Positions 41,906 to 44,230 of a stretch of DNA of 64,000 nt are shown one piece after another (the stretch's first letter is position 1; each line of letters begins with the position of its first letter). This DNA comes from Convolutriloba macropyga (lineage: Eukaryota). The position numbers and the translations under genes were made by a program. Under the pieces are notes generated by a model. It saw nothing but the letters and a program-made list of their open reading frames with translations. It did no database searches and had not been told where the DNA came from. The stretch is taken from the NCBI RefSeq assembly GCF_964194025.1, contig NC_134475.1:13330001-13394000 (forward strand). The letters are read 5' to 3'.

Positions 41906-42055
41906 GTTCATCCACCGACTTGGCAAAGAGATAAACAACCCGGAGTCCGTGTACTACTGGGCGTGGAAGAATAACATCCCAGTGTTCTGTCCTCCACTTA
42001 CTGACGGAGGAATTGGAGATCTTCTCTTCTTCCATTCCTTCAAACACGACGGAAG
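41906..42055 (+). CDS. DHPS: Deoxyhypusine synthase exon 5 (GAG acceptor, inferred GA donor)
   Basis: [46 protein letters not shown]; boundaries inferred from phase compatibility. Confidence 0.88.
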
Positions 42056-43875
42056 GAATGATCCATTCTGCTGTTTCTTTTCAACAGTTACATGAAAAAA
42101 TATTTGTGCATCTAAGTATTTCTTTCCACATAATGGCTTCACCAGTACGTAGCAAGAAACTCCGAAAGAATTTTTTTTTATCAGAGTCAGAAAAACTATA
42201 AATAGTTGAGCGAGATCTTGAATAAAGATATGAGAAAGGATAAATAACTGCATCATGCAATCCTCTTACTTGTACCCCTTATCAGTAGTAACAATTCGCA
42301 ATTTAAATAAAATAAATAATATCTCATGGTTTTAATGGCTTCAGTATTTTTTGTAGACTAATGACCTAGTGTCTCTAAAAACAAGTCTAATTTTATTCCC
42401 AAGGTGTTGCCAGTCGATTTGTTTTTCAGCTTTGTCACTTTTTATTTCTTTCCTTCAGAAGTAGCTTAGTCTCTGTATAAACAGTCCGTATCCTACAGGC
42501 CCAAAGTCTAATTCTTTATAACTTTTTTGTTTTAACTAATGGTTTCTTGGCCTTGATAATACGCATTTTCATTTAAAAATGCCATTTCGGATATCGAGTT
42601 TTTGAGGTTGTTCTATGTTTCCTTACCGCAACTGCAATTGAATGGGGAGGTCGCTTTAGCGTTGAAAGATTGCATAATTGAGCTTATAATAGTTTTTGTG
42701 AATAAATTATCGTTAACGGCTGCGTTACAGTTTTCTTGCTAATTTATTTAATTTAAGAGAATGTTAGCCTGTTGTTGTTCTTTTTGTAGTCGCATAACAT
42801 TACCCGGATAATGGCAGTTCGGAATTGTTTCCTTAAGAGGTATAAATTAACAGGTTTCAATTGCCTCCTCAATTATACATCAGGAAGTATAATTTAACCT
42901 TTTTAATGATTTCAGTTGATACCTTATGAGTTTAATCGTTTAGAAGTTATTGGTTTTCAATAGTTTAATTTTGACCTTTGTCCTCTTTGCAGTTTTTTTT
43001 TCTAATTGTTACGAAGTTTCATTAAGGAGAGATGTCCTTCTGGTAATGTAAAGTTCAGTTAATTTAGTTGGTTTAGTTAGGTGTTATCTAGCGCCGTTTT
43101 GATTTTGTTATTCTGTTTTCTTCATACATCTAGTTTTTAATGTAATTATTTTTTTTTATTTTACATTTGCTTTGTCTCGTGGTTTCATCATTGGCAAGTT
43201 TCATCAACCCTTTAATGTGGCCTTACTTTTATTCAGTGTTTTGTTGAACAATATGTGTCTCTGAAATTTTTTCTGTCTATTCCTCATTTGGTAGACCATC
43301 AAGTCAAAAATGCAGATTAGCGGTGTCGACCATTATGTGCAAACGCAGATTACCGAATCTCCTTGTTCCTATCAAAAGTCTTGTTCTATTTTAATATGCA
43401 GAAGAACAGGATGTTGAATGTTACAATATGTCTTTCATCTCATCGATATGTTCACTCTTTGCAAAGTTTTAGTTGGAATTATGCTTTTTGATTCTTAATA
43501 AGTCGACTTCTTGCCATTTTATGATTTACAGCTATTCGGCCGTCAATTATTTATTGGTTCACTGAAAAAATTGTGGTGATCAAGGTTAAAGCAATTAATT
43601 TTTTCTTTTATTTCTATACGAACGTCTCCTTAATTTTTATAATTTTACGGGGGTTTTGTCATTACAGCTTTGTGGCTATATAACAGATACCCTCCCCCGC
43701 GGTCACAGGCTTAGTGGTCAAATAATGTAAATATAGCCCCCATTACTGTAAATATATGTACCATAATGGAGACTAAATTTTCGCGGTGCTGGTAATGGAA
43801 AACATCCGCTTTTTCTTCGGAATTCAATTTAAAATGAAGTTAAATCAGACGCTAGGAAGATAAACAGCTGTTCAG

Positions 43876-44230
43876 GACTATCTCCATGGACATCGTACAA
43901 GATGTGCAGCGTATTATGGAAGTGGCTGTCAAATCCAAGCATACAGCTTTCTTTCTTCTCGGAGGGGGGGTGGCGAAGCACCATGTTTTGAATGCAAATG
44001 CCATGAGACATGGAGGCAGGTATTCGGTCTACGTCAATACTGCGCAGGAATTTGACGGCTGTGACTCGGGAGCACCCCCAGATGAGGCTGTGACCTGGGG
44101 CAAAATCCACGTGAAAGCGAAGCCTGTGAAGGTGTTCGCCGAAGCATCGCTGGTGTTGCCTCTGTTGATTGCGCAGACCTTTTTCAAATATCAAGGAGAG
44201 TTCGAAAAGTTGCTGCCTAAGGATGATTAG
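43876..44230 (+). CDS. DHPS: Deoxyhypusine synthase exon 6 (catalytic Lys in AVTWGKI)
   Basis: [30 protein letters not shown]; the six exons total 1140 nt = 379 aa + stop. Confidence 0.95.

Follow-up and report, generated by a model that had tools for sequence, protein, structure and literature searches.

The fifth intron of the deoxyhypusine synthase (DHPS) gene of the acoel Convolutriloba macropyga, at positions 42056–43875 of the 64-kb window (the whole stretch of DNA that was analysed), appears to begin with GA and to end with AG. We read it as a genuine spliceosomal GA-AG intron, probably of the U2 type, that appears to have been gained in this lineage and later enlarged by repeats, and we put the probability of this reading at roughly 0.85. 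GT at the intron start is among the most constant signals of eukaryotic genes. GA donors are known in larvaceans and dinoflagellates and, to our knowledge, the animals that routinely break the GT rule are few: the larvaceans and one copepod. Here the exception lies in an acoel gene for an essential housekeeping enzyme, is supported by RNA, is carried by two haplotypes and is accompanied by an intron-free ortholog that gives the gain its polarity. The case bears on intron birth, on how U1 and U6 read the +2 position, and on the annotation of acoel genomes. A gene finder that insisted on GT or GC would truncate DHPS at the stop codon at 42093–42095.

The DHPS gene occupies 34636–44230 on the + strand of the Convolutriloba macropyga window and has six exons, which are given here together with the intron under study (a slash marks the cut at each splice site).

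34636–34818, + strand: exon 1, starting at the ATG; donor CAG/GTGGGT; the boundary coincides with that of the ortholog in a related species (L001)
35539–35683, + strand: exon 2; donor TGA/GTGAGT, phase 1
40358–40547, + strand: exon 3; donor TAG/GTGCTC; Pfam DS match; transcript joint
41417–41533, + strand: exon 4; donor CAC/GTAAGA; transcript joint 41533 to 41906
41906–42055, + strand: exon 5, ending ..CAC GAC GGA AG; Pfam DS positions 137–183; transcript contig
42056–43875, + strand: intron 5, 1820 nt, phase 2; donor AAG/GAATGA, acceptor GCTGTTCAG/G
43876–44230, + strand: exon 6, stop codon included; Pfam DS profile positions 189–288; alignment to human DHS

Homology searches were run with single exons, or natural open reading frames (ORFs) of fetched loci, as queries. 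Searched exon by exon, exons 3–6 match the DS domain (Pfam PF01916), with exon 4 alone scoring 21.7 bits, below the 27-bit cut-off. Exon 6 aligns to residues 256–360 of human DHS, including the catalytic-lysine motif ..TWGKI... Introns 1–4 have ordinary GT donors and AG acceptors, so that one of the five introns of the gene has a non-GT donor.

A preliminary description of this locus, made from its letters, had argued that exon 6, entered after TTCAG, needs a phase-2 donor, that no phase-2 GT or GC lies between the conserved FFHSFK and an in-frame stop, and that a cut at AG/GAATGA (42055/42056) would yield a loop close in length to that of the protein family. Each step of this argument held when the sites were gone through systematically. 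The first base of exon 6, the G at 43876, completes an AGG codon (Arg), and a read-on from exon 5 is ended by the in-frame TGA at 42093–42095. All GT and GC dinucleotides in 42030–42098 were enumerated by phase and set against AG acceptors near 43876. From FFHSFK to the stop, GT occurs twice, at 42073 (phase 1) and at 42087 (phase 0), and GC once, at 42070 (phase 1), none of them in phase 2; the only GT/GC pair that keeps the frame is the phase-0 pair 42087/43867. With the GA donor, exon 5 ends in ..FFHSFKHDG plus AG, and the resulting H-D-G-R-T fills the gap of exactly five DS profile positions (184–188) between the exon 5 and exon 6 matches. The donor AAG/GAATGA departs from the consensus only at +2, +4 and +6, and AG/GTATGA is a single change away. 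A U12-type intron was considered and rejected: the donor, GAATGATCC, does not carry TATCCT at +2 to +7 (consensus /RTATCCTT).

The letter at +2 was followed in genomic data. Contigs of three DNA runs over 41664–42125 show the same letters as the window at and near the donor, A at 42057 included, and the sole difference among them across this stretch is G>T at 41890, in run X3. In another assembly, a search with the exon-6 peptide recovered a 99%-identical ORF (L002) whose exons 4 and 5 encode peptides identical to those of the window and whose donor is identical (GGAAG/GAATGATCC). Intron 5 of this copy (L002:1215–3990) measures 2776 nt, 956 nt more than that of the window; identity between the two is 92% across the first 258 nt and 83% beyond, and the L002 intron has ~1.09 kb of extra sequence. 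Variants of the L002 type, for example a TA insert behind 43829, make up a minor class of contigs in the DNA runs, which indicates that L002 is the other haplotype of the same animals. An error of base calling or assembly, with AG/GTATGA as the true donor, would call for one wrong base in an otherwise canonical site, but with three DNA runs from two samples showing no difference at 42057, and a clearly different haplotype carrying the same A, it is excluded as far as the assemblies allow and its chances are next to nil.

Flanking exons are 99–100% identical in protein between the two haplotypes, despite the divergence of intron 5. A second contig class was also present in the DNA runs at 40917–41323, with 29 differences and 7 gaps. 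The divergence of the haplotypes points to very high heterozygosity or to pooled lineages.

Evidence for the junction itself comes from a run of a different kind. Of the words of the region 40300–44600, four runs of one study contain 93–96%, and X5, a run of 2016 from another study and another sample, contains 33%. The record of X5 bears the label 'DNA?', which is a guess, and the run was taken as RNA from its behaviour. Its depth is ~120–270 over exons versus 0–14 over non-repeated intron sequence, and a loose end with poly(A) is found behind 44328. Its contigs join 40544 to 41414 across intron 3 (GT..AG when the cut is placed 3 further right) and 41533 to 41906 across intron 4 (GT..AG), and the end of exon 2, ..CCATATTCCTGA, is found as the loose end of a contig at 40358.

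Removal of intron 5 is recorded in a 567-nt X5 contig (record 28, depth 249) that covers 41414–41533, 41906–42053 and 43874–44172 with no extra letters and, over the exon 5 stretch 41906–42053, without differences from the window. The joint from 42053 to 43874 skips 1820 nt, with 148 nt on the shorter side and 4 shiftable letters, and the spliced mRNA (..CACGACGGAAGGACTATC..) reads FKHDGRTISMD, as predicted. DNA runs X1–X3 do not contain the joined form, which is thus not a retrocopy. AGGA occurs at 42054–42057 and again at 43874–43877, and five placements of the cut (AG..TC, GG..CA, GA..AG, AA..GG and AT..GA) give the same mRNA. The mRNA alone cannot fix the cut; GA..AG (42056–43875) was chosen because it is the only placement with a 3′ AG. 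This was the only joint found across intron 5 in assembled contigs, which made up the read evidence throughout and which hide rare isoforms and do not give splicing efficiency.

The preliminary description had also named an alternative, transcripts that use the phase-0 donor ACA/GTTACA (42086/42087) with the acceptor AAACAG/ (43867/43868). In the strong form of this alternative, the gene would normally use that pair and the GA junction would be minor. Both sites are present in both haplotypes and the pair keeps the frame, but the corresponding joint is used in no contig. Moreover, X5 depth over 42028–42171 is 45.7, the value expected from 26 exon bases at a depth of 249, which gives no indication that exon 5 runs on to 42086, and the phase-0 product would have 13 residues more than the continuous ORF of the L001 ortholog. 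That the gene normally uses this pair is, on these data, highly improbable.

From a related species (L001), the same exon-6 peptide search recovered an ORF with 80% identity, which lies on a contig of 668 kb in another ENA assembly. Exons 1–4 of this ortholog are split at the same places and have GT donors. Its exons 5 and 6, at L001:9812–10303, are one open frame (..FFHAYKHDGRTLSIDIVED..) in which the intron 5 site is read straight through (KHDGRTLSIDIVED), and its loop shows the two extra residues that the spliced model has relative to human DHS (KNPGL--VLDIVED). The continuous frame confirms the junction at the protein level and identifies a relative without an intron there; the junction predicted from the window is thus that of both the transcript contig and the relative's unbroken ORF. 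Two DHPS paralogs on L008, from the same assembly as L001, likewise run through it without a break (..FKNDG-x-SIRLDITED and ..FKHEGKTITLDVASD), as does the DHPS of a eukaryote from metagenomes (L003). In a DHPS-like gene of tuna (L007), the exon continues to ..LDIIE and the nearest intron lies ~9 codons downstream.

Intron 5 is therefore absent from all five comparators (the L001 ortholog, the two L008 paralogs, L003 and L007), which makes a gain in this lineage the economical reading: from the alignments, intron 5 would be a recent, lineage-specific gain at an AG/G proto-splice site. The reverse history would have an old intron lost precisely in the relative, with GA arising when T changed to A in a donor that had been canonical. 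Consistent with such a history, intron 5 is the 3′-most intron, the class most easily lost via reverse transcripts, and AG/GTATGA is only one change away. It would, however, need several independent losses to account for five intron-free comparators out of five, and we regard it as unlikely.

The related species has at least three DHPS genes, namely the L001 ortholog and a tandem pair (L008:1–453 and L008:1035–10318; also on L009). In one gene of this L008/L009 tandem, exons 1 and 2 are fused and an intron lies ~16 codons downstream of the intron 5 site. Tuna L007 holds two DHPS-like genes head to tail (1–194 and 2001–3966) with near-identical last exons (99–191 and 3871–3963).

L001 is syntenic with the window, the order of an HP1-like gene (chromo and chromo-shadow exons), DHPS and a Rad4/XPC ORF being kept between the two. 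In the window, the HP1-like chromo and chromo-shadow exons lie at 22059–22277 and 27522–27704, and the intron between them measures ~5.2 kb (22277–27522), versus ~0.5 kb in L001:3323–3833. The Rad4/XPC-like gene is a single intronless ORF of 1121 codons at window 48335–51700; its L001 counterpart (12117–15041) is intronless too, with 974 codons and 61% identity over 874 aligned positions. New introns were looked for in this neighbour and none was found, its ORF being uninterrupted in both species.

Within intron 5, the three DNA runs show single-copy depth over the first ~260 nt and over the final ~400 nt, and the repeated part is confined to the middle. The repeat and two short segments near the intron ends that might pair are as follows.

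42070–42082, + strand: 5′ half of a putative end-to-end helix (GCUGUUUCUUUUC), 14 nt inside the donor
43180–43467, + strand: very high-copy repeat, word depth 6e3–6e4 versus ~8–60 in the flanking single-copy sequence (DNA runs)
43856–43868, + strand: 3′ half of the same putative helix, 7 nt before the acceptor AG

In the repeat, numerous loose ends cluster at 43331/43333 and at 43367, which marks a ~35-nt core common to a very large repeat family. The stretch 43268–43356 is 80% like 28775–28688 on the other strand, which adjoins an element at 28799–31106. Within the window there are no further copies of intron 5, just this ~90-nt piece of repeat.

The two arms pair at 12 of 13 positions in the window allele and at all 13 in L002. 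The difference lies at 43861, where the window allele has T and L002 has G, turning a C.U mismatch, the only one in the helix, into a C-G pair. Duplex energies of the intron ends were compared with those of shuffled sequences and of natural window segments, the four GT introns of the gene serving as controls. For the window allele they were −13.4 to −15.0 kcal/mol (p ~0.1–0.2 versus shuffles, 0.04–0.09 versus natural segments), and for the L002 allele −19.8 kcal/mol (p ~0.009 and <0.001, respectively). The control GT intron 2 also reached p ~0.03 at 60-nt ends. The helix is one of 32 inverted pairs inside intron 5, none of which stands out as a terminal inverted repeat. End-to-end pairing of intron 5 is thus at most suggestive.

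These observations bear on whether RNA structure is required, that is, whether the intron derives from a mobile element whose ends, at 42070–42082 and 43856–43868, pair and bring a weak GA donor beside the acceptor. In keeping with this idea are the 13-position helix, significant in the L002 allele, the allelic T/G at 43861 falling on its only mismatch, the presence of a new intron in a genome rich in mobile elements, and the AGGA direct repeat on both sides of the intron. Yet pairing is within chance in the window allele, the helix pair is one among many inverted pairs, and its arms are subterminal rather than terminal. In the DNA runs both ends of the intron are at single-copy depth, which means that no recent element family terminates there. 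A 4-letter shiftable repeat, TAGG, is found at GT intron 3 too and is equally long, so that AGGA offers no evidence for a target-site duplication. We consider a requirement for structure, with an origin from a mobile element, doubtful.

Returning to the reading of intron 5 as a gained, spliceosomal GA-AG intron, its recognition may be pictured as follows. The ordinary U2-type machinery would most probably read the site, tolerating in this lineage a base other than U at +2 provided that the remaining donor positions are strong; here that strength would come from the exon-end AG together with the G at +1, the A at +3 and the G at +5. The intron would have been gained at an AG/G proto-splice site, and repeat insertions would have enlarged it afterwards. 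Within the 64-kb window there are no snRNA genes. A bolder and tentative form of this proposal is that the major spliceosome of the lineage needs only AG/G at the 5′ splice site, so that new introns are spliced whatever base follows the G, +2 repeats the base at the second position of the exon that follows (AGGA...AGGA), and pairing of the ends helps the youngest introns. If this were true, acoels of this lineage would be a further, undescribed animal group of this kind, and intron birth would be directly readable in sequence.

Full-text literature searches on non-canonical splicing in acoels returned nothing relevant, and comparison has to be made with other groups. In the larvacean Fritillaria borealis, 95% of introns reportedly escape GT/AG and most are non-canonical at both ends (PMC13326754). 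DHPS intron 5 would resemble the introns of larvacean tunicates (Oikopleura, Fritillaria borealis), an animal lineage in which the major spliceosome removes many introns that break the GT rule, and it is unlike those of Fritillaria in keeping its 3′ AG and in belonging to a gene of which four of the five introns are canonical. In vertebrate FGFR genes, a GA donor is used efficiently by the U2-type spliceosome (2003 work, as cited in PMC5714493). As that citation presents it, the FGFR site is used in alternative splicing and relies on a conserved element close by, whereas the DHPS site is the sole route to the full-length enzyme.

Introners (PMC11282704) and new Daphnia introns with flanking short repeats (PMC4202315) are matched in another respect, namely a putatively new intron at AG/G, flanked on either side by AGGA, in a genome rich in repeats. 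Unlike introners (PMC11282704), intron 5 has single-copy ends that no multi-copy family shares, and its border repeat is no longer than that at GT intron 3.

The preliminary description had also pointed to a copepod, and this parallel is borne out. In Eurytemora affinis, GA and GG donors have a near-obligate exon-end AG and A at +3 (Robertson 2017, PMC5714493), and the introns concerned are recent and lineage-specific, with U1 unchanged (PMC5714493). The present intron belongs to a different phylum, as an acoel intron, and has a possible end-to-end helix that is not reported in the copepod paper. Like the copepod introns, it has, with the cut placed at GA..AG, a donor with G followed by a base other than T, the exon-end AG and the A at +3 of the Eurytemora rule, and an ordinary AG acceptor; it is needed for the full-length protein and, as far as contigs show, is not alternatively spliced; and, like them, it appears to be lineage-specific, recently gained and absent from relatives.
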